This document shows positions 1 through 31,107 of a DNA stretch of 32,000 nt, one piece after another; position 1 is the stretch's first letter; every line of letters begins with the position of its first letter. Made by a program: the position numbers and the translations under genes. This stretch comes from Wallemia ichthyophaga EXF-994. Its lineage: Eukaryota > Fungi > Basidiomycota. The notes under the pieces are model-generated. The model had not been told where the DNA came from. It searched no databases and saw only the letters and a program-made list of their open reading frames with translations. The DNA lies in assembly GCF_000400465.1 (NCBI RefSeq), contig NW_008806282.1, forward strand, positions 390,001 through 422,000, written 5' to 3'.

Positions 1-189
1 CTAACACCTATCGTCGTATATGGCGCTTTGAATGCCTATATATACTTTCAGTATGTTGAAGGTTTTCAAATTGTCCACTATTACCTGTAATGTGGGGGCC
101 ATTTGAACCCATTCACCAATATTTGCACCTCTCTGCATAATAATTATGGAGATGTACAATGCAGATTTTGCGATGGTATGTTTCGTACC
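1..189 (-). pseudogene. Decayed fourth copy of the secreted 10-Cys protein family; runs off the window edge
   Basis: Shares a 17-nt exon/donor block (75-91 = 3230-3246, ccactattacctgtaat) and an 11-nt pre-ATG block (190-200 = 1003-1013). Reads CKYW*MGSNGPHITG|intron|IQSAIYDDRC*: the second Cys codon is TGA, a TAG follows the third Cys, and there is no ATG at the homologous position. Confidence 0.7.
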
Positions 190-614
190 CTTGATCGAGT
201 ACTTCGTAATGCTCAGTCACCATCCTTCCTGGTGTCTCTGAATACTTTACAGTTTATATCACTGAAGCAGCATTAACAGTGAGAGTGGTTAAGGCAATGG
301 CAATTAGTTTTGAAAAGATTTTGTTTAAAGATCTACAAGGAAAAACTATCATTTATAGCTCTGACACCTGTCATTGCGTCGATACGTCGTCACGGTAGAC
401 AAAGCTGAGACAGGTTGTATAATTCAGGTTGTAGCATTAATGCGCTCGAAAAGCACTATTTCTACGGCATTTATTCACTTTCAGCAAACGAGGTCAAATT
501 CTGACAGCAGAGATCATTTAGTTACCAATCAAGCTATCTTCTTATTCCTGAGACGAATACCTATTCATCGCTTTTGTTTGTTTTTACACATTACTCCTCA
601 TTAAGACTATTCCT

Positions 615-1002
615 CTAGCAGTATTGGTTATCTATCCTGGTAGAGCAATTTTCAATTTCCCATTCCCCTCCTTGATGGTTGCACCACTCTTTAAAACCTT
701 CAATATCTCTTTGGTTTCTGTTAGGCCCGCTTTCTGTCAGACGGCAGAAGTCACAGTTGTAGCCGAATATGTTGCAACTGTGACAAGCATGCGAGGAGCA
801 GTAGCTGTCTGGTATACCGTTTTGAACTCCTAGATAATTGTAAGAAGATCAAAACTTCGAAGGACTGTTTCTTACCTGTGATTCGCGTTTCAAATTTATC
901 ACGGCTATAGCACATGAAGGAGCATTGTGTATTTCTATGACGATTGCGAGCGTTTACTGCGAGAAACACTGAGAAAATAGCGACAAGCTTCGAAAACAAC
1001 AT
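615..1002 (-). CDS. Small secreted cysteine-rich protein, copy 1 (113 aa, 10 Cys; exons 1002-876 and 829-615)
   Basis: Splicing a 46-nt GT-AG intron (830-875) gives MLFSKLVAIFSVFLAVNARNRHRNTQCSFMCYSRDKFETRITGVQNGIPDSYCSSHACHSCNIFGYNCDFCRLTESGPNRNQRDIEGFKEWCNHQGGEWEIENCSTRIDNQYC*. It has a hydrophobic signal peptide and is paralogous to copies 2 and 3. Confidence 0.88.
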
Positions 1003-1035
1003 CTTGATCGAGTGAAAAAAGGCCATATTCACAAC

Positions 1036-1043
1036 TATTTATA
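1036..1043 (-). promoter_or_regulatory. TATA box of copy 1
   Basis: TATAAATA 34 nt upstream of the ATG, at the same position as in copies 2 and 3. Confidence 0.6.
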
Positions 1044-1701
1044 CTTCTGTCATACGTCATTACCTCGGCACAGGCTCTCTCACAAGTGTATGACAATTGA
1101 ATGAACTTACGAAATGTCAGACTGAAACAGGAAAATCGCAATAGTTCTGCAGTACCGAGCCTAAGTTTTTGCCCTCAACTTTCGGTAAACGATGTCAAGA
1201 TCTTTGACAGCATATTAATAATTTGCCAACAAAGCTAAATTCACCGATGATTCGCTTATTTCAGGTTGTTCGAATGCTTTTGGCTGTGATGTTTCTAGAC
1301 CATGTCTTAACTTTTTGCGTGGCTAACATATTATATGCAAAGTCCCAGGTATATGTTCTGATCTCATTGTCATAGTCATTGTATAATACGTCATTGATGA
1401 AGCTTTAAATTGAGTTAAAGTTTCTGTGATTAAGTCCGATAGAATTATGGACACTATACTAAAAATGCAGCTCGTCATTACGGTAACTAGAGCTGAATCG
1501 TGTTGTACGATGTTGAAGCAAGAGCTTCAGGTGCAGCATTCACTATAAATACTTTCGAAATACACTATCTACGCTACAATCAATCCACTTTTGGCCAACG
1601 AGGTCAAATGTTTGATATTTAAGATTAATGATTTAGTTCGTATTTATGGACAAATTTATTTACTCCTTGTTCTATTATTCTCCAATTGTAGCATCCTTTA
1701 T

Positions 1702-2096
1702 TTAACATTCTCTGCTGTCATTGTATCCGCAATTGTGTTCTGCTATTCTGCCTCCTTTATTTTGACACCAATTAGTCACACGTGTAATATCTATTGAATT
1801 CTTATTTCCGTTAGAAGTGTCGCTCCCGGGTGCATAGTCCTCGAAGCGGCAGTACGTGCAGGCTGATGCGACAAAGTTACAACCGTGGCAGCTATACCAT
1901 GCGCAACTATCTTCCGGAACAGGACTTTGAATTCCTGGCTCTTATTATCAGAAAATATTAGTTTATATTTCTCATCATTACCCTTTATAACTTTGCCAGT
2001 ATATTTGTCGTTGCATTGATAGTTGCATCTGTATTTTCTTTCAGCGCTAACAGCAAGTGCAATTGAGACGATAGTGACGAGCTTTGAGAGATACAT
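1702..2096 (-). CDS. Small secreted cysteine-rich protein, copy 2 (115 aa, 10 Cys; exons 2096-1982 and 1934-1702)
   Basis: Splicing a 47-nt GT-AG intron (1935-1981) gives MYLSKLVTIVSIALAVSAERKYRCNYQCNDKYTGKVIKGIQSPVPEDSCAWYSCHGCNFVASACTYCRFEDYAPGSDTSNGNKNSIDITRVTNWCQNKGGRIAEHNCGYNDSREC*. Confidence 0.9.
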
Positions 2097-2125
2097 CTTG
2101 GTTAAGTGTAAATGAAATGTACAAC

Positions 2126-2132
2126 TTTTATA
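2126..2132 (-). promoter_or_regulatory. TATA box of copy 2
   Basis: TATAAAA 30 nt upstream of the ATG, within a ~65-nt block conserved with the copy 3 promoter. Confidence 0.65.
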
Positions 2133-2564
2133 CCTCTGAAACCTTGGCATGTGTCAGAACATTTTTATCAAAGCTGAGGTAAGGATGAATCAACTTAATG
2201 CAAAACACACCCAACTTATTGTATGATATTATAAGTATAACGTCAAATTCAGATCCTAATCGTATTCCACCTTCCAAATTTTATTTGACAATCGGAGCTA
2301 TTGACCAGTCGATCAAATCAAATACGTCAACGACACACGCTTAACTTCCGACATAATGTCTGAAGCACGTCAAGAGTCGAATACAATGTCACCGTCATCA
2401 AATACTTGGTAGAGGAAAGATCAACCTCGTAAAAATTGAGTGGATGGTAATAAAAGGGTCTTTTGGAAACGCTAAAAGCATATGATTATAAGGACTTTTG
2501 AATTCAATTCAATTAGAATTACATCAGAAAATAGATGATTGAGGGAATATCCAGAAATGCGGAC

Positions 2565-2597
2565 GAAGTTAATGAGAAGTTAATGAGAAGTTAATGA
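2565..2597. repeat. Tandem 11-mer x3 (gaagttaatga)
   Basis: Three perfect copies in the spacer between copies 2 and 3. Confidence 0.9.
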
Positions 2598-2976
2598 GAG
2601 GAGAAGTGAAATGCTTGAATCCCAGTTGAATTTTTGTGTGCTGTATCGTACAAGTTTTCAATACTTCGCTTTCCTGTGCTCATCTTCTCACTTCGTTGAC
2701 CATATTGCGGGGTGAGCTGAGCAGATAGATACTGTCGATTTAGCGGTAATTCAGAGAGCTTCTTGAACTGATTTTTCAATAAAAACTCTCTGCTATTTCA
2801 GTATCTCGGTATGAGGTTATCATTGCGCTGTACGTATAGGCCCATTTCTATTCCAGACAATCACACAAGGCAAGACGTTCTGCGACAGATTTGCGAGCTT
2901 TGAAATCTTCGACTGTGATGTGAAAATGTATTCCTTATTCCATTTTAATACATTGGCTCCGACAGAAATTTTTTAT

Positions 2977-3351
2977 CTAGCATTCATGGCTATCATTATC
3001 GCCGCACTTGTGTGTTACTATTTTACCTCCTTGCTTATTACACCAATCAGTTACACCGACAATATCTCGCTCGTTTCCAATCTTTGAGTATTTCTTAGTT
3101 GTGAGGCGGCAGTAATCGCAGTTTGCTCCGGCGATGTTACAACTGTGGCAGCTTTGCCAGGTGCAAGCATTGTTCGGTACACCCTTTTGGATTCCTATAT
3201 CATTTTAACAGTATAAAAAGTCCAATAGGCCACTATTACCTGTAATAAGCTTGCCGTTTTTGTCGTTGCACTGATAGTTGCATCTGTATTTTGATTTAGC
3301 GCTGACAACAAGTGCAATTGAGGCAATTGCGATGAGCTTTGAGAGATACAT
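2977..3351 (-). CDS. Small secreted cysteine-rich protein, copy 3 (109 aa, 10 Cys; exons 3351-3240 and 3194-2977)
   Basis: Splicing a 45-nt GT-AG intron (3195-3239) gives MYLSKLIAIASIALVVSAKSKYRCNYQCNDKNGKLITGIQKGVPNNACTWQSCHSCNIAGANCDYCRLTTKKYSKIGNERDIVGVTDWCNKQGGKIVTHKCGDNDSHEC*. Confidence 0.9.
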
Positions 3352-3385
3352 CCTAATTTAAGGAAGTTGAGAAAGAAACTGAGAC

Positions 3386-3392
3386 TTTTATA
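3386..3392 (-). promoter_or_regulatory. TATA box of copy 3
   Basis: TATAAAA 35 nt upstream of the ATG; flanks conserved with copy 2. Confidence 0.65.
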
Positions 3393-3413
3393 CTTCTGAA
3401 ACATTGACATATG

Positions 3414-4331
3414 TCAGAACATTTTCATCGCAGCTGGAGTAAGAATGATGAAAGGAAATGGAGGACATGAGCAATAAAGCGACGATGAGTTAATGTGGCA
3501 TTCATTAAGGCATTTGTAGCCATTTCTTCGAAACGCATTGTTTTCACTTCACTACAGCTTCCTAACTCACCTTTGTCTCCCTCTGCTTTCTGCCATGCAT
3601 GTCAAACCTATTCTGACAGTCGGAACCATTGAGATGCCGATCAAGATGGATATGAAAACAAAGCTTGTGTCGACTTCAGCCAATAGAATGAGAGTGCGGC
3701 TGCCCCAGTTTGTGAACTTCCGAGTGCGATCGATGCCATAGTTCGCGACTATATCATGAGCTGAAAACGCGGGTCTCGTCCAAAACTGCGTTACCTGCGT
3801 AGTCGATGAAAGGCTGCAACTCTCATGAAGTTTTTACCAGGTTTGTCCAGTCTCAGCGCCATGCAGACAAGGTTGGAGGCACCTGTGAAGAAGGCATAGT
3901 TGAACAGTGCTCCATGAAAGCTGCCATATACTGCAAAAGTGATGAAATAAGTGTCTGGGGGAGAAGGAGCTCTTTAATACCCCCACAGAACGCGTATGAA
4001 TGCCTTAACATAACCGATAGCGGATGATAAACAGTGCAAATGCATATATAACACATCAGAACCAACTATAATAGCCAATTGTGGTTGTGAGAAGGTTCTA
4101 AGGCAGCAATTCCTAAGCTGCTTCTGTCTGCTTCGAATGCAGCTAACTTGGCAAGTGATGCAGGGGATGTAGGGGATGCTGGAAATGGCCGACAGAGATG
4201 ATTCAAGCAAGAAGCGGGACGGTCATGTACACAAAGCCAGAACGCCCAATGCTTGCACATATCACCAATCCACATGCACTTGGTTACGCAGCAAAAAAAT
4301 CCAAGTAAAGGAAATGAAGAGATTTGAACAT
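3414..4331 (-). CDS. Probable multi-exon integral membrane protein (possibly a pseudogene); boundaries unresolved
   Basis: Hydrophobic exon-like segments (VIYAFALFIIRYR|APSPPDTYFITFAVYGSFHGALFNYAFFTGASNLVCMAL; TLILLAEVDTSFVFISILIGISMVPTVRIGL) are joined by plausible ~43-nt introns, and there is a strong AG|GTGAGT donor near 3530. The best model has an in-frame TGA at 4056-4058. Confidence 0.3.
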
Positions 4332-4411
4332 TTAAAGCTTTTAATATTTGTAAATATCGTAGTGTCGATTGCCGAATCGAAGCCGCTTACATCACAACTA
4401 CCACTTGCAGT

Positions 4412-6586
4412 ATGAGCAAGCAGCGCGTATCCAGAAAATCGCTGAGACGGCCAACGACATTCTATGGCGCAAGTGAAGAAATCCCGCCGATGCCTCGCCA
4501 GTCGATGACGCAGGAGGATCTCCCAGCGACCACCAAAGCAGCGGCACCGATAGGGGCGAAGAAATACAAACCAAAGGCACACGCAAAGGATAGAAAGGAA
4601 GGCAAAGATAGTGAGAATGATAGCAAGACGAGATTAGGCGAGAAGCTCAAAAAGAGGCTGTCCGTCAAGTACACCTATCAGCAGCCAAAGACGAGGACAG
4701 TTGGCAGCGCACCACCTGTGCCCTCCCTCCCGAGCACTCATATACCCAACCAGAAACAGACGCCGCAGACGGAAGATGTCAGAGAGAGCTTACTTGAGGA
4801 TATCGACGAGAACCGAGTCAGCCAAGTGAGCCAAGTGGATGCCGATATTGATATCATCAACAGAGAGTGGCTCCAGCAGCCAGACTTTGATGCTCAAGCT
4901 TGTGAGTGCGCTCATGTCTTTCTATTCACGTCTAACTCCGATAAGACATTCGTACACACCTCGCTAATGCCAGTGAGGACGAGGTGGAACACTTCAAGCA
5001 GGCCCTCACTGATGCTATGCAGTCTACCAATTTGCAACTCGAACAGAGTGCATTCAAGAAGTATGTGGATCGTTTTCTATGTTGTCTTAGCTCACACTCT
5101 CAAAGTTACGCTGACTTTATCGCCATTTCAAAGGAGATTGGCGCTCTCGAGACAGAGGTGCTCGAGCTGCGCGAGCTGCTTGGGGAGTGGAGAAGCCTCC
5201 CGGAAGCATTCGGTGTTGAGAACGTAGAGTCTGATCTGGAGACAACAAAGAAGAAGAGATCATCAGTTGCAGATCTTGCAGCCGTGTACAGGACCCAGCT
5301 GCAGACGCTACACTCTACAGTCGAGGGTTCGTTGAAACACGTACCTCATGCACCAGGCAGACATGTCGTGACGACTGCATCCAAGTTCGTTGAATTGAAC
5401 GCTGCGACTTACAGAGTAGCGCAGTCTGTCGAAATGGTCTTGCTGAATGACACCCTCCTTATAGCCAGCAAGAGAAGACGTCAAGCTAGTGGCGGTCGCG
5501 AGAAGCTCATCGCCGATCGTGCTTGGTCTTTGTCTGAAATCAATATCCAGGATCTCCGAGATTCGATTAAGGTGACGAATTCTATCAAAGTTAAGCATAA
5601 CAAGCAATCGTATGTGTATATGGCTGAGTCGCCGAGCGATAAAAATGTCTTCTTGAATGCCGTTAAGCAAGTCGCAGAAGAATACCAAGCGCAAATGGAG
5701 CAGCAGCAACATAATCAAGAAGGAGATCTCTCGCCTAATTTCATTATCAGTCCTTCGATAGCGTCAATCCAATCGACGAATTCGCCTTTAAGAACGCCTA
5801 TATCCTCTTCTAACAAACACTTGCAATGGATGGAAGACTTTATCGATGAGCTGTCAGTTAGTGTCGCCGTCAATGACCACCATGCTGCTGTCGAGCACGT
5901 GGAGCAAGGACGGAAAATGCTCAGAAGCACCGATGACAAAAGTGAACGGGAGGCACTACAAGCCCAAATAGCGCACCAAAAGGGTATACTAGTGAGAAAC
6001 CTGCTACGCGTTGTCGACGACTTTTCAAGACTTCGGGAGCATGTTCTAGTTGATGTTATCTCGCTGTTGCACAGATTGGATGAAGCAGGCGCCGGCAGAG
6101 ACACCTACTTGAACAGTCGCAAAGAGCTCATCAAGCATAGGTCGAGGCAGATGGTGTTTGATGGAGACGTAGTCAACTACGTTGCTGAATTAGCAGTCAT
6201 CACCTTTACGATAATCAAGCAGTCGGCAGAATGGTTCAGGGCTGCATTCATTAATACGAACAAAGCAAGCGGTGAGTGGGACGCATTAAATCTCGCCAGC
6301 CAAACTGATCACCATCAGGATATGGAAACTGGGCATCTGAGCAGATTAAAACGTTTGCAGTCATGTTCAGACGACAGGTATATGGCTCGCATCTGGGGAA
6401 GAGCATTATTGAGCGTGCGATTCAAGTAACACACGAGCAAGGACAGAGAGTAGGTGATGGATAAGAAGGTAACGCTGCGCTGACTGACTGATTGCACAGA
6501 TACTGAAAGAGGTGCAGACGTCGACAGACCTGTGTGTCATACTTAATAAGCAGATGGAGGAGCAAGTATCGCCTAGTCTGATTTGA
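4412..6586 (+). CDS. EXO84: Exocyst complex component Exo84
   Basis: ORFs 4412 and 4984 join via intron 4902-4945 (DAQAYIRTHLANASEDEV). A Vps51-like helical region is followed by a PH-like segment (FVELNAATYRVAQSVEMVLLNDTLLIASKRR) and a helical C-terminus (WASEQIKTFAVMFRRQV). Two further 3' introns; the stop position is approximate. Confidence 0.82.
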
Positions 6587-7116: not shown

Positions 7117-7605
7117 CGCGTGTGAGCATTCGAAGTTGGTGGTGAGGTGCGAGGGATCAATTGGCGAGCAGTGAGGGTTTAGTGGGATAATTTTAAAGGT
7201 GTTTTGAAGGAAAATATACTTTTATGCCCACAGATGCCTCCACTTCTCTGTATGAGGCGTGGATGCCGTGACTGTCTCCCGATAACGCCCAGTCACGAGA
7301 AATGGCAGTCGTATAGCAGAATCAGCGTCTATGGCATCATAAATACTTATTAACACCCAAAAGACTTCCTATCGGTGGATATCGTGAGCTGGAATCGTTG
7401 ATACACCGCTAACGCTGATAGCGGGATATACAGCACAGAGAGAAACGCAAACAAGCAGCGGAAATAAATTTCATCTAAATACACCTCACGCACCCACTAG
7501 CACCCGCTTCACTACATCCACAAACAAATTCTTTTGGTCTTCCTTCTTCACTCTTCATCACGTACATCCAACAGCGCAGCGCGTTGAAAAATAAGAAGCA
7601 GCAAA

Positions 7606-8179
7606 ATGTCAGCAGATCACTCCAGAGACCCATGTCCGTATGTAATTCTCAATGATTTCGGTGGTGCGTTTGCGATGGGTGCGGTCGGTGGTTCAATCTG
7701 GCACGGTATAAAGGGAGCGAGGAACAGTCCCCGTGGAGAGAGGTTGCCTGGTAGTTTAGCGGCAATCAAGGCTAGAGCGCCTGTACTCGGTGGTAACTTT
7801 GGTGTATGGGGTGGTATGTTCTCATCGTTTGATTGTGCAGTCAAGGGCGTTAGGCAGAAGGAAGACAGCTGGAATGCAATTATTTCTGGTTTCTTCACTG
7901 GTGGCTGCTTGGCTATCAGAGGTGAGTAGCCTGTTGCTTGCCACAGTTGCACCACAAGCTAACAAGACACAGGCGGTCCTAAGGCGGCGCTCGGTGGTGC
8001 TGTCGGATGTGGTATCCTTCTCGGTGTCTTTGAAGGTGTCGGTGTGCTCATTAACAAGGCCATGAGCGATTTCAGCAAACCTCAAATGCCAATCGGTGAG
8101 TTTTCTTGGGTTGATCGACGTCATTGACACAGTCACTGTAGCTCCTGAACAACCACCAGCCGCTGCAATCTCACATTAG
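7606..8179 (+). CDS. TIM17: Mitochondrial inner membrane translocase subunit Tim17
   Basis: [22 protein letters not shown] and [22 protein letters not shown] signatures; introns 7922-7972 and 8096-8141. Confidence 0.95.
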
Positions 8180-8265
8180 AAGGATGACCACCTCCGTTTT
8201 GCATAGAATAAACCCTCAACCCACTCACCCCTGACTTCTAATCATCTTCTTCATAAATACATCTG

Positions 8266-11200
8266 CTACTTATCGACTACATTATTTTGCGTGTTGAACA
8301 GTTTACCACGACAGTTCGGTGCCCCACAGAAACATTCTGGTACGGCTTCCTCTAAGATACTGTCATCATCGTCTAGGACTCTCTTTGCCTTCTTTGACCT
8401 TATCTTTGTCTTCTTCTTTTTCCTGCTGAGTGCTTGCTCAACATCCTCTTCGTCGCTGTCGACACCCATGTATCTAACAACAGTTAGCTTCCGGTAACAT
8501 TTCAGCGCTCCACTCACGATATAGACAGCTCCTCGTTTTCTCTGATATCCCGCAAGGCATAGAATCCCAAGAAAGGAAGATCGACCGAGGTTTGCACAGT
8601 GTAGACGGGCTATGGGGAAGTAGGAGTGAGTGGAAGATTTTTAGCGCTCTACGAACTCACCTGCACAATTAAATTAGGCTTGCAACAATGGTTGATAAAT
8701 CGGGTGAACTACTTTGTGTCAGTTTACTGAAGGAGATGTGGCTATGTGACCTACATTTCCGATGAAAAAGGCATCAATGGCTATTAAAGTGTTAGCCATA
8801 TGCAATACTCCACACCAGCGTAGATATCACCCACTGTAATAGGATTGTAAATCAAAGTCAATATCACGGTACTGTTGCAGTTCCTTCTGCGGGCTGATGA
8901 GCGACTGAAGTGGTCTGCCAGCTTCGTTGGCAGTACCTGTACTTGTATTACCAAGTACATCGCCACTATCTTCACTCAGTTTCTCAAACCGCTTCTTGTT
9001 GCATTGCGTTGCCTTAGCATACATTTTTTTATTCCGCAGATGGTAAAAATCGATATCAAAATCGTATTTCCGGTTGACCCTGTGTTACGCTGTGTGAGAA
9101 AGGGTGGGGTATGATGTTGATGGGGAGTACCACTTACTTATCATATATACTAGGATGGTTTAGAGTGTACCTAAAAATGCGCGCACTTGACTCACTCTGA
9201 TCTATGTATAGCCATATCGTTTGTGATATATTCTCCAGAGTACACAGCAATAAACTGTCCTTTCTGTATCTTTCTTCGAGTCCGCACACCTGTTCGAGTT
9301 TGTTAGTATGTGCAACCTAGCTATAATCACTTCAACCCACCCCATCCCATCTTCTCCTTCTTGAATATTTCCAAGTTGAAGTTGGTCGGTTTACTAGTGA
9401 CCTGAGAAAGTTTAGAGGGTGAATGATTGGAGGGAACCTCAACGTACTTTATTCTGACAGCTATCGTCACACCCGCAAAGCTCATTGCATTCGAATATCG
9501 GCAAGTCTCTTGTATTTAGCAGTCCGTCATCGTCGTATGCTGGTGTGGTGGTTGTGGTAGTGTTACCGTATGAACAGTGCTCAACACCCATCTCACTCAC
9601 CACAATAACGATCGCAGAAGCCTTCAAAGATGTACTTCTGGCGCTGGAAACATTCACATGTCGACGGATCGCATTTACCATTGCATCCACACCGCCGTTG
9701 ACCTTTTTCGTTGTTCTTGGGCACACCGCTGCCATACTGGTGTGTGTAATATTTCAGAATTAGGTCAGATCAACTAAAATTTCACCTACACATGGTTTGT
9801 TGTTGTAGATAAACTCGACAGGCGGACAAGGATCGCTGTCAACCTGAGATGAAATTGAGAAGGGGTAAAAAAAAACGGCAAGCAACCCACGCACATCATT
9901 ACGAATTGAGAATGTGTTTCTGTTATCCATAAGTGTCTCAGCCTGCTCTATATGAGCGAGGAATGTATGCTCGAGGGATTTGCTGTTCAAAACCTCTCCT
10001 GTTCTAGGATGCCTTCTTAAGCTACCGACAAACTTCAACCCAACAAATTTATCAGGTTTCTCGGCTAATTTCCACGCTTCAAGCTCCGACGCTTTATCTA
10101 TTTCTTCCTGACTATACTGCTTATCGTCATATCTTTTGTATGCCTCCCGCTGCTCACGTGGCATATTGATGAAAACGGGTTTGATGATTTGTTCAATTGT
10201 AGCTGGTTTTTTTGCAGGGCCTTCAATGACTTGGGTTGTGTTTACGCGTGATTCTCGCTCAAGTGTCACCAGCTGAGCGCGTTTTCGCTGCTCAAACGAT
10301 GCATTGGGGTCGTGGAAACTGTGTTCATCCTCCGTTATCTGTAGCATCGCTTCGATCGTCTCATCATTGACTCTATCGGTGATCATCCGCTCATTGAACG
10401 GCTGCTTGAATTGCTTGAATGGTTTGATATCTTTACATATTCTGTTGCGACCATTTTGGAGTGTATTGGTATTAGTGTTGGCGTGTATTGAGTCGCACGT
10501 TTTCCTGTTGTTCGTACCTTGCATACTCTGCATACACTCCTCCAACATGGGCTTCTCCATGTAGTTTGGTGGGAGAACAGGTTTCGTTTCAGGTGGAGAG
10601 TATTTGCGTGTCTTCTTTCTATGCCCGGTCGAAGAACGCTCAGGTATAGACGTCGGTGGAGAGCAAGACGAAGAGCTAGATGGGATGGCTTTTGTAGTGG
10701 CCTCCACCTCATTTTCGCTATCAGAGGATAATTCTATAATGTTGCTGTTTAAGTTTTTGCCCAAGTCTCTACTCAACGTCTTGCTCAAATTTCTGCTCAA
10801 GTTTCTGCCCAAATCTCTGGTGAAATCTCTGCTCATCTTTATCTCTTCATCCACATTGTGAGGTTGCGGGTGTGGTTGCAGTTGTGGTTTTGATTTTGGT
10901 TGCGGCCGTCGTTGTGATTTTTGCAACTTAACTTCAGTCTGTCGCATATTATTGATTAGTTTGGGTTTCTCTTTCTCTCTCTCCTTCTCCTGCTCGCTCT
11001 TGCTCACCTTCTGCGGTGTGGAGTGGTTATTGGCGGTGTCAGGTCTGAAGTCGCGCACGCCTCTGAAGCTAGGTAATGATCCTTTCTTGATAGGAGGGAG
11101 AGGGGATTTCTTTGGCAGCAGCGACTCATGCGAGCTGTCGGCAGAGCTCATAGTGGGGTTGATAGGGTTGATGGGGTGAACGGGAGTAGCGAGATTTTTC

Positions 11201-11807
11201 CTTTCCGACGCGTGCATCGCGTGTATCAATGGCCGTGTATTGTCGCTCTTATTCTCCGTCTCACGAGGCTGCGTCCGAGAACGTTTAGAAAGCTGCGACG
11301 GCGACGGCGACGGCGATGGCGATTCTCTGAGCGACTTGCGCGAGCGGGTGACAAAGTCGTCAGACGTGTTAATTGAAGTGGGAGAGTTGGCTGATGTGCC
11401 AGAAGTGGCAGAAAAGCCACCACTAAACCCGTCTCTCCTCTTTCTCTTAAATTTCTTGTTGCTGTTGTTATCGATAGAGAGGAGGCGCTTCTCGGACTTT
11501 TTCCTGATCGCCGTGCTTGTTGGTGTGGCTGCGTTTGTGATAACGAAGTGAGATTTGCATGGATAGATACGCGGAGTAACTCACACCCAGTATGAAACAA
11601 TCCTCTCAGCTTATCGCTTGATTTCTGCTGGTATATTACGCCGCCAGGTTGAACAGGTCGCGTTGAAGTTGGTGGAGATGGCGCAGATGGCGCAGATGGC
11701 GCTTGTGCTGTTGGCTGCGGTAACACGGCCATCTCAATACTCTCCATCTCTAACTCATCTTCACTTGGGAATAAAGACGTCTCGTCGGCGTCCATCGATT
11801 CCATCAT
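8266..11807 (-). CDS. Clr4/DIM-5/SUV39-type histone H3K9 methyltransferase (pre-SET, SET, post-SET); multi-exon
   Basis: VDSDPCPPVEF; pre-SET CGCNGKCDPSTCEC and IFECNELCGCDDSCQNK; SET motifs GWGVRT, YSGEYIT, YDFDIDFYH, GNFTRFINHCCKPN and RDIRENEELSISY; post-SET CFCGAPNCRG. The long low-complexity N-terminus joins via an intron near 11520-11575. Confidence 0.85.
10751..10836 (-). repeat. Degenerate 12-nt coding repeat (about 7 units) encoding (L/F)(S/G/T)(R/K)(D/N/T) tetrapeptides
   Basis: MSRD FTRD LGRN LSRN LSKT LSRD LGKN in the N-terminal region of the SET protein. Confidence 0.8.
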
Positions 11808-11889
11808 GACTGGACGTGAACAACAGACAAAGACAAGAAAATTGGCATTTGTTTTGACATTTAGATGTAAATGTATAAATATTTATATT

Positions 11890-13207
11890 CTACTTGTCCC
11901 CTTCAAGCCACCTACCAAAGTCATTCAACCTGTGTTGCTCGTCTTGTTCAGCTGTCTCAGTGTATTTGTTGGTGCTTTCAGTGGTTTTAAACGTCTCCTT
12001 GCCATCGTAGAGGTAGCTGACCACTCTCCTGCCTGCAAAGTATCTACCTTCGTATTTCTACGCTGAGTTAGGTGGATAGGAGTACGTAGATGATTATCTC
12101 ACCAACACACACGCCTGTGCTGCGATATGATCTGAGAACTTGACAGTCATGATTCCATCTGGCTCAGCCTATGGGGAGTGAAGGTGTAAGCAAATATTCA
12201 CCGCCAAGTGCACTACCAACTCACATCGTAAAGCACCACGCTTGTCACCTTTCCAATTTGCTCGGCGTCTTCGCGTACATCTTGCTTCAAATCGAGCAAC
12301 AGCGTTGGATCCTCTTTCAGTTCACCGGGAGTAAACATATGCCTCAGTACGACGACTCTTGAGGTAGTATTCGAGGGCAACCGATCAGCCAGGCCAGACT
12401 CATCTTCGCTATCCCAATCGTTAAGTTTCTCATCCAATTTCCTGAACTTTGTCTGTTTCCTCCTTTTTTCTTCTTCAGTGAGAGGTTTAGCGGGTTTCTG
12501 TGTGGTGTGCTTGCTATTGGTGTGATCACTAGCCTCAGGCTTGAAATCTGCGACAGAGACTCTAATAGCACTGCCATCGCCATACCTAAGCTCGGTATCG
12601 TCGAGTAGTTGCACGGCAAGACTAACGCTGTCCTGCTTATAATACACCACCAAAGCCTCACCTTTGAAATTACCAAGATCGTCTGTATAAAGCTTTACTT
12701 TCGGGCTGCCATCGTCGTTGGTGAGGAGAACGCCGTACTTGGAGAAGACGTCTGCAATTTCATCGACGGTGACGTCAGGAGGGAGGCCAGTGACGAAGAC
12801 AGCAGTTTTTGGTGGAGGAGGTTTATCTCTTTTGGCGTTACTATCGTTGGGCTTGTTCGATGTGAAATCCTTGCGCTTCTTCTCGTGTCGTCTGGCTACG
12901 ACGTCTGCCGGAGTCTGTGGAGGAATGAGAGTGATCGTGGGTAGACAGCAGCCACACTAACGCTCTCGTCAACGCCACTAACACCGTAAGCAGCCTGTTG
13001 AGCAGATAATTGGTCTAAATCAGCCTAAATCGGAGTGAGCGTGGTGTGCACTGAATCCAATACACCTCCACGCACCACAGAAACGAATCGTTGAAATTTA
13101 ACATCCCACTCCATCTCGCTGCCATCATCGCCCTCCAAAACCCAATTCTGTTTTGCTTTATCAAAGGAAATACGCGGATCATCGAAATTTGGTGTGTCGC
13201 TAGTCAT
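11890..13207 (-). CDS. CUS2: U2 snRNP-associated RRM/UHM protein (Cus2/TAT-SF1/Uap2 family)
   Basis: RRM1 (AVFVTGLPPDVT...KVKLYTDDLGNFKGEAL.VYYKQDSV.LA) and UHM (VVVLRHMFTPGEL...LDLKQDVRED...GKVTSVVLYD, RYFAGR); several introns. Confidence 0.85.
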
Positions 13208-13317
13208 GGTGGGGGAGTTGAGAGGAGAAACACCCGCACTGAATATAAATATCAAGATAAATTTATCATGTATAATATTTTCACTTTATTTTTCATTCAT
13301 CGTTATCAACGACGGTC

Positions 13318-14403
13318 ATGGCCTCACCCACCCCGGAATCATTCAAGCCATTATTGAAGAAGCTGGCAACTGATTCTATCAGCTTCACGGAGGAGGATAT
13401 GGCAACTTCATTTGAGCACATAGTATCCACCGATGCCCACACACCCGCGCAGATAGCAGCATTCCTCACAGCGCTCAAATTAACCGGCAACGACGAGAAA
13501 GCCGAGTATATAGCAGCAGCTGCGACTGTTATGCGCGCCCACTCTGTCCAGATACCCGGTTTAGACAGTATCCCCACATGTGATATCGTTGGTACGGGTG
13601 GTGATGGTCTCGATACGTTCAACGTTTCCACCGCTGCTGCTGTTGTTGCGGCTGGTGCTGGTGCCACTGTAACCAAACACGGTGCACGCTCAGCCTCTTC
13701 TGCGTCTGGCTCTGCAGATCTTCTCCTGTCCCTCAACTGCTCCCTCTCGATCCACCCTTCCCGTCTTCCCGCTCTCCTCTCTTCCAGCAGATTCGCATTC
13801 CTCTTTGCCTCCAATTACCACCCTGCCATGGCCCACGTAGCCCCTCTCCGCCGCGAAATGGGTTTCCCCACCATATTCAACTTCCTCGGTCCGCTCATGA
13901 ATCCAGCCAGGCCGACGCGCATGGTGGTTGGTGTCGCTAAGCGCAGCTTGGCGGGTGTATTCGTCGATGCCCTCCAGCGTCTTGGCGTCCAACGCGCCAT
14001 GGTCGTAAGAGGGAAGGAGGGCATGGACGAGATCAGCCCAGCGGGCGAGACGGAGATTTGGGAGCTGTGCGACGGTCGCGTAAAGGAGTACACCGTTTCT
14101 CCATTCAATTTCGGCGTTAAGGCCCACCCACTCTCCTCCGTTAAGAGCGGCAGCCCTACTAACAACGCTAATCTTTTCAAATCCATTCTCGCTACTTCTA
14201 CGCCCTCCTTTGACGATATTCCAGAGGGTGTTGAACTCGCTGCGCTCAAGGATTGGATCCTTATCAACGCAAGTGCCCTGCTCGTCGTCGCAGGTCAGGC
14301 TACCAACTTTGGCCAGGGCGTTACTAAAGCCAGAGAGGCCATCGAGGGGCTCCACGCTAAGGCTGCGCTGGATGCTTTCAAGAAGGCGGGAAGTGAGCAG
14401 TGA
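13318..14403 (+). CDS. TRP4: Anthranilate phosphoribosyltransferase
   Basis: DIVGTGGDGLDTFNVST, KHGARSASS.SGSAD, TIFNFLGPLMNP and GMDEISP motifs; intronless, 361 aa. Confidence 0.97.
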   Translation: MASPTPESFKPLLKKLATDSISFTEEDMATSFEHIVSTDAHTPAQIAAFLTALKLTGNDEKAEYIAAAATVMRAHSVQIPGLDSIPTCDIVGTGGDGLDTFNVSTAAAVVAAGAGATVTKHGARSASSASGSADLLLSLNCSLSIHPSRLPALLSSSRFAFLFASNYHPAMAHVAPLRREMGFPTIFNFLGPLMNPARPTRMVVGVAKRSLAGVFVDALQRLGVQRAMVVRGKEGMDEISPAGETEIWELCDGRVKEYTVSPFNFGVKAHPLSSVKSGSPTNNANLFKSILATSTPSFDDIPEGVELAALKDWILINASALLVVAGQATNFGQGVTKAREAIEGLHAKAALDAFKKAGSEQ

Positions 14404-14480
14404 GCAAGCGTGTGCTACCTGTGGGTGTGTGCCATTATAGCATTTGTAATGACAATAGACGTGGTATAGAATCAACGCAG

Positions 14481-15741
14481 TTAGTGTACACGATAATAAG
14501 ACACGGCGAGACCTAGACTGAGGGCGAGCAAGGCTCCGCGCGTACTGCTCCGCCAGCCCACCAAGTAGAGGGCGAGCCAGGCGTAACCGATGAGCAAATC
14601 AGCTGTTGTGCCCAGTAGAGCCTTGAAGTGGGCGTGACGGTCGTAAGCGTTAATGTGGTTGTGGTTGCGACTGTCCATCTCCATCACATGGCTACACTCA
14701 CCATCCACACACACCATCGCCGTGATAGGCTTGTGGTCGCTGATGGTCACCTGTGGAAAAGAGTCGTAAAAGACGCAGCGAGTCGCTGCGGCAGACGCAA
14801 AGAGGACTCTGTCCGTCCAGCTGGGGTCGCGACGCGCATCGACACCGTCTACGCTACCCACTGTGTATTTATAAGTGGGCAGGAAAGCGCTAAAACAACC
14901 CTCGCGCAGTCCGTTCATCACTCGCCCACCACGCATTTCCCGCGCCAGCTCGTCATGAGAGGCTAACGAATCAAGGTCGATAATTTTCTGCTCTAGCTTG
15001 CTGTTGCTAGAGCTGCTGCTGTCGCCGTACAGCCTGTAATTGAGGTCACCAAAGACCAAGAGGTGGGTGGAGTCGTATATGGATGGTTTGATGCGCGACA
15101 CAAGTGATCTGTAGTCTGTGATATGTGATATGCACACTATGTCAGTATGAAGCACCTAATCAAGACACCCATCTCACCCCAATTGCGCCGCGCAACATTC
15201 TCCTCCCCTTGGTGCGCGGCGAGGTGAGCGTTTACGAGGGTAAGAATACCGCCGCTGGGGAGGTGAATGCGCGTAGAAATCGCGCCCTTATTACCCATCA
15301 CGCCGCCAACGCCTAGACCGACGTGCGTGGAGTGTGTGTGTGTTTGTTGGCTTGCGATGTGGGGGCGGGCGTAGACGAGCATTGTAAGACCAGCGAAGGA
15401 TGACTGATGGATGCAAGTGTATATGACGTCACTGTTGTTATCTTTGCTATCACCAACACCCGCATACTTGGTCAGCGCCCTGTGCACCGTCGACGCCGTT
15501 CCGCGGAGTTTGTCAGACGCGTTCCAGCCGCTGACTGAGGAAACAGCGTCAGATATATTCATAGACCACTCGCTCACCCACGCGCTTCGGCCAGTGGCTG
15601 CGTTTCCTGTGTACCGACAACAAGCAGATCGGGAAGATCGGAGAGACGCGGAGATGGAAGAAGCCAGTCAGCCAGCTCGTGTGGCTTGACGCTGCCCAGC
15701 GATCTCTCGTGGACGTTGAAAGATGAGATTTGAATTTTCAT
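14481..15741 (-). CDS. Inositol polyphosphate 5-phosphatase with C-terminal membrane anchor (Inp54-like)
   Basis: MKIQISSFNVHE...PDLLVVGTQE, GNKGA, NAHLAAH, FGDLNYRL, PTYKY and PSWTDRVLF motifs, plus a hydrophobic C-terminal tail; at least two introns. Confidence 0.85.
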
Positions 15742-29879: not shown

Positions 29880-30302
29880 TTAAAGGTCTTGCGAGTCGAT
29901 GCCCTCGCCCTTCTTGGTCTTGGATGGGAGGAGTTCCGTGTGGATGTTTGGAATAACACCGCCTTGTGAGATGGTTACATGGCCAAGGAGCTTGTTGAGC
30001 TCATCGTCGTTTCTGATGGCCAATTGCAAGTGACGAGGGATGATACGCGATTTCTTGTTGTCGCGTGCAGCGTTACCAGCCAACTCGAGGATTTCTGCAG
30101 CGAGGTATTCCAACACAGCAGCCAAGTAGACAGGGGCACCAGCACCGATACGTTGGGCGTAGTTGCCATTCTTCAAGTGTCTGTGGATACGTCCGACTGG
30201 GAATTGGAGACCGGCCTTTGAGGAACGGGAGCGACCTCCGTCGATTGCGCCTGCCTTGCCGCCAGATTTACCGCCAGATTTGCCGCCGACTTGTTGAGAC
30301 AT
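29880..30302 (-). CDS. HTA1: Histone H2A with C-terminal SQDL (gamma-H2A-type motif)
   Basis: [17 protein letters not shown]...[26 protein letters not shown]; intronless; true ATG at 30302. Confidence 0.98.
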
Positions 30303-30350
30303 GTTTTGATTTAATAAGTTGAGTGTCGAGAGAAGAAGGGAGCTGTTGCA

Positions 30351-30628
30351 GTATTTATACTCCACCGAGGAAATCAAAATCGACACGCGCTTCTGATTTT
30401 GGAAATTGATGGTTTGATCTAGAGTGGGTAGCAGGTGGAGGAGTGCGCGTAAAACTCTGAAAAGCACATGAAAAAAATCCTCATAAATCTGGCTAAATTT
30501 TGGTGTGCTTTTTACCCACTGTTACCCCCTTGATCACGGAGATCACTCAACATCAGGCCGGATTTAGAATTGACAAGAATGTTGAATCGCGTGACGTGAA
30601 CAGTTTGGGCTTTGTATAAAATACGCGT
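30351..30628. promoter_or_regulatory. Bidirectional H2A/H2B promoter with TATA boxes and four ACGCG cores
   Basis: TATAAATA on the minus strand at about 30352-30359; TATAAAA on the plus strand at about 30615-30621; ACGCG/CGCGT at 30385, 30446, 30588 and 30623 (ACGCGT). Confidence 0.6.
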
Positions 30629-30675: not shown

Positions 30676-31107
30676 ATGGCACCAAAATCAGCAGAAAAGA
30701 AGCCCGTCTCCACCGCTGGTAAAGCCCCAGCCTCTGCCACCAAGCAACCTCAAGAGGGTGGTAAGAAGACAGCTAAGGCTCCAAAGGCCGACGGGGGCGA
30801 CAAGAAAAAGTCGAACAAGTCCCGCAAGGAAACATACTCGTCGTATATCTACAAGGTCCTTAAGCAAGTCCACCCAGACACTGGTATTTCCAACAAAGCC
30901 ATGAGTGTCCTCAACTCGTTTGTCAACGACCTCTTCGAAAGAGTTGCTTCGGAAGCCTCCAAGCTCGCATCCTACAACAAGAAGTCTACCATCTCATCCA
31001 GAGAAATCCAAACCTCTGTCCGTCTTATCCTCCCTGGTGAACTTTCAAAGCACGCCATCTCCGAAGGTACCAAGTCCGTTACCAAGTTCTCCTCATCCAA
31101 GGCTTAA
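30676..31107 (+). CDS. HTB1: Histone H2B
   Basis: [27 protein letters not shown]...[19 protein letters not shown]; intronless; divergent from H2A. Confidence 0.98.

Follow-up and report, generated by a model that had tools for sequence, protein, structure and literature searches.

The left part of the genomic stretch analysed here carries a tandem array of small genes, whose predicted products appear to form a new orphan family, although of a general type well known from fungi, the small cysteine-rich proteins for secretion. This stretch, called the window below, is the 32,000 nucleotides (nt) of scaffold KE007232.1:390001-422000 in assembly GCA_000400465.1 of Wallemia ichthyophaga EXF-994 (PMC4987115). 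W. ichthyophaga is an obligately halophilic basidiomycete with a genome of 9.6 Mb, of which 74% is coding, 4884 predicted proteins and a mean intron of 61 bp (PMC3849046). The array consists of five tandem copies, four intact and one decayed. Three of the intact genes, named g1, g2 and g3, lie inside the window, and the extra copies were recovered from L001, L002 and L019 (the last being the reference locus), all of which reach beyond its left edge.

Gene models were obtained on the minus strand by trying every GT..AG intron 3' of each ATG, and for each of g1-g3 one model restored a long frame with a C-terminal Cys. The gene g1 (615-1002) starts at the ATG at 1002, with exon 1 at 876-1002, a 46-nt intron at 830-875 (GTAAGA..CTAG) and exon 2 at 615-829 including the stop codon; it encodes 113 amino acids (aa), of which about 95 aa would form the mature protein. 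In g2 (1702-2096, ATG at 2096), exon 1 (1982-2096) and exon 2 (1702-1934, including the stop) flank a 47-nt intron at 1935-1981 (GTAATG..CCAG), which contains a branch-point-like CTAAT, and the product has 115 aa, about 97 aa when mature. The third gene, g3 (2977-3351, ATG at 3351), has exon 1 at 3240-3351, a 45-nt intron at 3195-3239 (GTAATA..ATAG) and exon 2 at 2977-3194 with the stop, and encodes 109 aa, about 91 aa mature. All three introns are in phase 1 and split the Gly codon of ITG/IKG, which is followed by [IV]Q. These models bear out an earlier note on this DNA, which had proposed three spliced genes for proteins of 109-115 aa with a phase-1 intron at this Gly. The note had also warned that the genes are easily missed in the open reading frame (ORF) track, which was essentially right: exon 1 is in frame but runs into the intron, and exon 2 is present only as out-of-frame ORFs.

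All five copies lie within the 5.8 kb that separate EXO84 (exocyst complex component; start at window position 4412) from the ATP synthase OSCP gene. No gene has been called in this interval, neither in the EXF-994 annotation nor in six annotated population genomes (the strains of PMC6738226). The interval without annotated genes covers window positions 1-4411 and 1.4 kb further leftward (KE007232.1 about 388,600-394,411) and holds the four intact genes. The suspicion that they had been overlooked was thus well founded, since the array is without annotation in the reference and six other strains. In public ORF sets, the family is represented by no more than P0001, an unspliced out-of-frame ORF of g2 from another strain. 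We also scanned window positions 1-4500 against Rfam and found no match.

The fourth intact gene, copy 5, is located at 17709-18082 of L019, which puts it 0.6-1.0 kb beyond the left edge of the window. It encodes 107 aa, and its 47-nt phase-1 intron has a perfect CTAAC branch point. Copy 4 has decayed. The 5' two-thirds of it occupy window positions 1-352 on the minus strand and run off the left window edge, with a signal-peptide remnant IFSKLIAIALTTLTVNAAS at about 263-322, in-frame stops and no ATG at the homologous place. An intron-like segment is retained at 36-84, followed by the start of exon 2 (GIQS...C, then TAG). In strain L001, the remaining exon 2 of this copy keeps WNSCHICN..CDDCRL..WC, while the last Cys is lost and further defects are seen. 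Two further features were recorded in this region. Window positions 1-4000 form a low-GC island (0.39-0.40, versus 0.44-0.57 elsewhere in the window), and the spacer between g2 and g3 contains a short tandem repeat at 2565-2598, in which the 11-nt unit GAAGTTAATGA is present three times.

The copies share more than their coding sequence. When four upstream regions were aligned, about 110-125 nt 5' of each ATG proved to be conserved as a block, in which a TATA-like box precedes the start by 35-42 nt. On the minus strand of the window, these blocks are found at 3352-3470 for g3 (TATA-like box GTATAAAAG, about 35-42 nt before the ATG), at 2097-2215 for g2 (also with a TATA-like box; 80% DNA identity to the block and exon 1 of g3) and at 1003-1125 for g1 (TATA-like box GTATAAATA). 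The 3' flanks also have blocks in common. Because upstream and 3' blocks are shared, the duplication unit would have carried its own regulatory DNA, and the array is best explained by old duplications of a unit of about 1.1-1.25 kb that comprised promoter, two exons and 3' flank. The most diverged copy is g1, with 38-49% identity to g2 and g3. It has a second in-frame ATG at 1024-1026, 24 nt (eight codons) upstream of 1002. The ATG at 1026 lies only about 10 nt past the TATA-like box, the paralogues are without it, and its use is improbable; the start at 1002 is favoured by homology to the remaining copies and by where the TATA-like box lies.

Variation within the species was examined in nine strains, namely the reference, L001, L002 and L023-L028 (the contig of L002 stops short of copy 5). 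Every intact copy that was reached keeps its open frame and its GT..AG sites in all of them. The g1 protein is identical in the nine strains, a single strain shows one replacement in g2, and two single replacements were seen in copy 5. For g3, two protein haplotypes were found, which differ at three positions (S74A/T86N/I96L; strains L001, L002 and L028 are concerned). Between the reference and the divergent strain L001, we counted 9 differences over 1344 coding nt (0.67%), 5 over 185 intron nt (2.7%) and 136 over 4296 intergenic nt (3.2%). The exons are thus about 4-5 times less polymorphic than the introns and the intergenic DNA (Fisher p = 2e-8), so that it is the exons, rather than the predicted introns, that are under selection. 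The support for splicing at the 45-47 nt introns is comparative in kind. Fitting the annotated EXO84 protein to the genome gave introns of 44, 45, 47 and 50 nt, the same size class as those of the family.

Comparison of the paralogues points in the same direction. In tblastn searches they found each other with E-values of 5e-24 to 4e-33, which places the similarity among copies, as judged from the sequences, far beyond chance. Their synonymous sites are near saturation (proportion of synonymous differences, pS, 0.45-0.8), and the ratio of nonsynonymous to synonymous divergence (dN/dS) of the mature part was 0.17-0.51 where computable, so that the paralogues are to be regarded as old duplicates under purifying selection. 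The earlier note had stressed that the non-Cys residues are strongly diverged. The divergence is there, and it would reflect old duplications kept under purifying selection. Positive selection was considered as the force behind it and found unsupported, as dN/dS was below 1 wherever it could be computed.

These results bear on the possibility that the array is non-functional, consisting either of decaying relics of a past acquisition or of chance ORFs joined by imagined introns. It would agree with such a view that the array is unannotated in 7 annotated genomes, that no transcript-derived protein was found in the large protein collections, that copy 4 is clearly a pseudogene and that the copies sit in a low-GC island. 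However, the low polymorphism of the exons, the intact frames and splice sites in nine strains and the dN/dS below 1 between old paralogues speak against it, and so do the retention of all ten Cys even in a distant homologue and the conservation of the promoter blocks. We consider non-function very improbable, and real, functional genes are the best explanation of the array.

The predicted proteins are built on ten cysteines. The numbers of residues between successive Cys are 3, 21, 4, 2, 6, 2, 20, 11 and 8 in g1, 3, 20, 4, 2, 6, 2, 27, 11 and 7 in g2, and 3, 19, 4, 2, 6, 2, 22, 11 and 7 in g3, and the tenth Cys is the C-terminal residue in all three. This is exactly the spacing pattern that had been proposed from a first reading of the DNA. 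The protein alignment has 36 invariant columns; besides the ten Cys, they take in His and Asn of the C-H-x-C-N motif, the Arg that follows C-x-x-C, and D-I, W-C and G-G; the motifs CHxCN, CxxCR and DI..WC..GG of the same reading are therefore invariant. A [YF]-x-C follows the signal peptide directly in every member, and it occurs twice in g2 and g3, as had been stated for copies 2 and 3. The ten Cys, an even number, are invariant in all members including the distant homologue described below, and the C-H-x-C and C-x2-C knuckles lie six residues apart in all members. Copy 5 has an eleventh Cys (F-G-C-N-C).

Signal peptides were judged by eye from the sequence (n-, h- and c-regions and the -3/-1 rule). 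The N-termini read M-[YL]-[LF]-S-K-L, with Lys in the n-region and then a hydrophobic core of 11-12 residues. Small residues stand at -3/-1 in all members (VSA|K, VSA|E, VNA|R and VQA|E), and cleavage is predicted after V-x-A, at residue 18. The mature proteins would be of 9.9-11.2 kDa and strongly hydrophilic, with a grand average of hydropathy (GRAVY) of -0.80 to -1.06. The net charge varies among paralogues from -1 (g1) to +6 (g3, isoelectric point (pI) 8.8).

An AlphaFold2 model of mature g3, made with a five-sequence alignment, reached a mean predicted local distance difference test (pLDDT) of 77.3 and a predicted template modelling (TM) score (pTM) of 0.69. The model has strands at residues 5-12, 47-51 and 76-84, one helix of 13 residues at 61-73, and a long loop region, presumably pinned by disulfides, which holds G-I-Q and C-H-x-C-N. 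The [YF]-x-C motif is part of the first predicted strand, which holds the C-x3-C pair. A model from three sequences was discarded as too poor (pLDDT 56.6), and the Foldseek matches of that model were meaningless.

No known family was matched. Pfam-A, searched with the first three proteins and then with six members, gave 0 families at E<=10, and sequence-profile searches of the PDB gave nothing but a chance cytochrome match (E = 3.2). Foldseek with the pLDDT 77.3 model found no match at E<=0.001 in PDB or BFVD; the best PDB matches were ferredoxin-like sandwiches (E = 0.13, TM about 0.4) and the best BFVD match had E = 0.49, all non-significant. The earlier note had called the Cys pattern unrecognised and had asked for a profile search and for AlphaFold with Foldseek. 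With these searches run, the description stands: no characterised family was found in Pfam, in the PDB, among 1.84 billion representative proteins or by Foldseek.

The best Foldseek match raises the question of a metal-binding or redox protein, in which the C-H-x-C and C-x-x-C knuckles and the invariant His would hold zinc, copper or iron, for example for extracellular scavenging or buffering, instead of all Cys being paired in disulfides. All members have the motif C-x4-C-H-x-C-N-x5-C-x2-C with the invariant His, the match itself is the ferredoxin-like copper-binding domain 1fvq (E = 0.13, TM 0.36-0.41), and the array sits where relatives have a multicopper oxidase, which may be coincidence. 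However, the 1fvq match is non-significant and the metal-binding motif of that family is unmatched, and Pfam and PDB sequence searches showed no similarity to metal-binding families. In addition, the predicted signal peptide would lead into the oxidising secretory pathway, and an even Cys count with a C-terminal Cys is typical of disulfide-locked domains. Metal binding is therefore an improbable function of these proteins.

Comparison with individual families led to the same result. Hydrophobins have eight Cys in the order C-CC-C-C-CC-C with two CC doublets and are amphipathic and moderately hydrophobic, whereas the array proteins have ten single Cys and are strongly hydrophilic. The claim that they are not hydrophobins thus holds, with no CC doublet in any member, a GRAVY of -0.80 to -1.06 and no Pfam match. 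What they do have in common with the class of small cysteine-rich proteins that fungi secrete (hydrophobins, cerato-platanins and HFS) is a predicted signal peptide, a length of about 100 aa, a conserved Cys scaffold with the rest diverged, and tandem birth and death. HFS proteins are of 219-280 aa with the eight-Cys pattern C-CXXXC-C-C-C-C-C (PMC8596622). This pattern differs from the ten Cys of the array, and there was no sequence or fold match to hydrophobins, cerato-platanins or HFS.

Killer toxins were compared in the same way. The HM-1/WmKT killer toxin has about 88 aa when mature, with ten Cys, five disulfides and an all-beta, beta-gamma-crystallin-like fold, and inhibits beta-1,3-glucan synthesis. 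The array proteins are like it in mature size, in having ten Cys, in being predicted as secreted and, in g3 at least (pI 8.8), in being basic. In contrast to its all-beta fold, the g3 model has the helix 61-73 packed on the sheet. The array proteins had no sequence match among the PDB chains, in which the solved structure of HM-1 should be included, and HM-1 was not among the Foldseek matches. Fungal killer toxins of the KP4, KP6 and SMK type, which are alpha/beta sandwiches, are likewise small, secreted, disulfide-bonded alpha+beta proteins, and the weak Foldseek matches of the array are ferredoxin-like alpha/beta sandwiches. These toxins are virus-encoded, whereas the array genes are chromosomal and predicted to be spliced, and all three were absent from the top 50 PDB Foldseek matches and from Pfam matches at E<=10. 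The earlier note had set the Cys spacing apart from that of KP4, and no likeness to this toxin was found in sequence or fold, although the model is of moderate confidence and a very remote kinship of fold is conceivable.

Two further classes share short motifs with the array. Defensins of the CS-alpha-beta type, of about 40-60 aa, have CxxxC in a helix and CxC in a strand, while the array domain has about 90 aa with C-x3-C in a predicted strand; CxC is missing in 4 of the 5 full-length members, and in copy 5 the extra Cys gives C-N-C. The Y/F/WxC effector candidates are a motif-defined class of powdery mildews and rusts, which are haustorium-forming plant pathogens. A [YF]-x-C after the signal peptide is common to them and the array, and that class is defined by motif and not by homology. 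As for the suggestion of an effector, a host-directed role is unlikely in W. ichthyophaga, a free-living halophile.

Relatives were searched with a mature-domain profile by full HMMER in the 1.84 billion representative proteins. One true relative, P0002, was found (E = 1.7e-13). The hit P0003 was rejected as spurious, being a repetitive protein of 1518 aa (E = 4e-5) with 32 residues covered. An enriched profile gave no further relatives, and a word-indexed search with two profiles in 5.8 billion proteins returned only P0001 and P0002. P0002 and its allele P0004 are intronless and have 101 aa, a predicted signal peptide and ten Cys in register with the array, and they keep G-I-Q, C-H-G-C-N, C-D-Y-C-K, R-D-I, W-C and Q-G-G. 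P0002 is located on short 18%-GC contigs, L013-L018, which stem from several sequencing runs without relation to each other (Logan contigs; runs SRR28063813, SRR32745550, SRR32745544, SRR33854216, SRR33854193 and DRR860105). These contigs are rotations of one circle or tandem unit of about 1.35 kb, which also carries part of a pyroglutamyl peptidase gene of bacterial type; this piece is N-terminal and truncated, and its DNA is 73-80% identical to Fusobacterium and Enterococcus genes. No relatives came up when JGI metagenomes, viral contigs of IMG/VR and the bacterial and archaeal genomes of GTDB were scanned by pattern and tblastn, and a search of PLSDB plasmids with P0002 gave no match.

The history of the locus can be read from its neighbours. 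A multicopper oxidase gene adjoins EXO84, on the side of the array, in W. mellicola, in W. hederae and in a third Wallemia lineage (84% identity in EXO84), and in W. mellicola the intact oxidase lies between EXO84 and OSCP. No copy of the family was found by tblastn at the syntenic site of these three lineages, where the readable stretches are short in W. hederae and the third lineage. The window itself retains an oxidase remnant of about 190 bp at 3757-3940 (tblastx E = 6e-16). The syntenic oxidase in relatives, the remnant here and the low-GC island together suggest that, in the lineage of W. ichthyophaga, loss of the oxidase was accompanied by gain or expansion of the array at this place. 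That the family is lineage-specific, as had been claimed, holds with a qualification: it was not found at the syntenic site of the three other Wallemia lineages, but it has a clear homologue, P0002, on 18%-GC contigs of an unrelated organism. The restriction to W. ichthyophaga is provisional, because in other fungi a search of protein sets would miss genes that are spliced and unannotated. Horizontal transfer between the fungus and the AT-rich organism, in either direction, is possible. A far-reaching version would be a new disulfide-rich fold and a high-salt toxin or antimicrobial family, moved horizontally between the halophilic basidiomycete and the unrelated, extremely AT-rich organism, where it sits beside the peptidase fragment on the element of about 1.35 kb, with the intron gained after arrival in the fungus. 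As a whole, this scenario is rather unlikely.

For the function of the mature proteins, we tentatively favour extracellular defence or competition molecules, antimicrobial or killer-type. We infer the steps from expression and splicing to an antimicrobial role as follows. Each gene would be transcribed from its own TATA-type promoter and then spliced at its one phase-1 intron of 45-47 nt. The signal peptide of the precursor of about 110 aa would direct entry into the endoplasmic reticulum (ER) and would be cleaved off after residue 18. In the ER, the ten Cys may pair to five disulfides, and the resulting mini-protein of 9.9-11.2 kDa, compact, hydrophilic and of alpha+beta type, would be secreted and may act on competing microbes where salinity is very high. 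Charge and surface would have changed from paralogue to paralogue, with a small patch kept (G-[IV]-Q, C-H-x-C-N, D-I, W-C and G-G). We prefer this role because of the architecture of the array with birth and death of copies and a pseudogene, the diversification of charge, the patchy distribution and the hydrophilicity, which also makes a role like that of hydrophobins less likely. The signal peptide of the youngest pair has a dN of 0.11, versus 0.35 in the mature part, and this better conservation of the signal peptide is circumstantial evidence for the defence role.

Several points weigh against a defence role. The average dN/dS is below 1, without the arms-race diversification of many toxin families, and the 10-30% NaCl in which W. 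ichthyophaga grows would screen any antimicrobial action that depends on charge. No structural match to a known antimicrobial or killer-toxin fold was obtained by Foldseek in PDB and BFVD, with a g3 model that is moderately confident and built on five sequences. No transcript or spliced product was found in a collection of 15 billion proteins, including assemblies of public sequencing runs.

The purifying selection and the near-invariance within the species would fit a housekeeping-like structural role, and the proteins may, instead of harming other organisms, be incorporated into or cover the cell wall of the multicellular clumps, which is unusually thick, and serve the build of the wall, adhesion or tolerance of salt. 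Expanded hydrophobins and salinity-dependent wall remodelling are known features of W. ichthyophaga (PMC3849046). The array proteins are predicted to be of the secreted cysteine-rich kind, and an N-D-S glycosylation sequon is conserved near the C-terminus of g2, g3 and copy 5. However, we saw neither a GPI signal nor a linker rich in Ser/Thr, and neither repeats nor a known motif for anchoring in the wall, and with a GRAVY of -0.8 to -1.06 the proteins are not amphipathic like hydrophobins. In addition, no such cluster was found at the corresponding site in the three other Wallemia lineages, which are also thick-walled. A wall function is thus doubtful, yet to be taken seriously. The same selection would also fit an extracellular signalling or developmental factor, pheromone-like or morphogenetic, for clump formation or sporulation, with paralogues serving different stages or conditions; the proteins are small and predicted to be secreted and stable, and a few conserved surface residues would suit receptor binding. 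Five tandem copies are unusual for a signal, and no linkage to a mating-type locus or receptor gene was seen within the window, which leaves signalling a slim prospect beside the defence role that we favour.

Other parts of the window were recorded in passing. A divergent histone H2A/H2B pair, identified by ORF translations, lies at 29880-30467 (minus strand) and 30676-31107 (plus strand). In the region equivalent to window positions of about 7,500-14,500, the population-genome annotations L023, L025 and L027 contain overlapping or fused models. In these annotations, an RRM/SET model of 1485-1490 aa overlaps the Tim17 gene, and a phosphatase model of 739-743 aa overlaps the anthranilate phosphoribosyltransferase gene on the opposite strand. 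Both look like annotation artefacts. For the roughly 200 'novel transcripts' of the genome paper (PMC3849046), no coordinates are listed in its supplements.

In conclusion, our results correct the annotation of a reference extremophile genome, with four intact genes and one pseudogene in 5.8 kb that look empty in all seven annotations. Orphan cysteine-rich secreted families are common in fungi, so that the novelty is at present of an ordinary kind and the reasons for interest are all modest. Since the array was missed in seven annotated genomes, the number of small secreted genes with introns is probably underestimated in this group. An AT-rich organism of a very different kind holds the one homologue, which makes horizontal transfer a question that can be checked. 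If the proteins are stable and active at high salt, they would provide a new scaffold for salt-tolerant antimicrobial or binding proteins.

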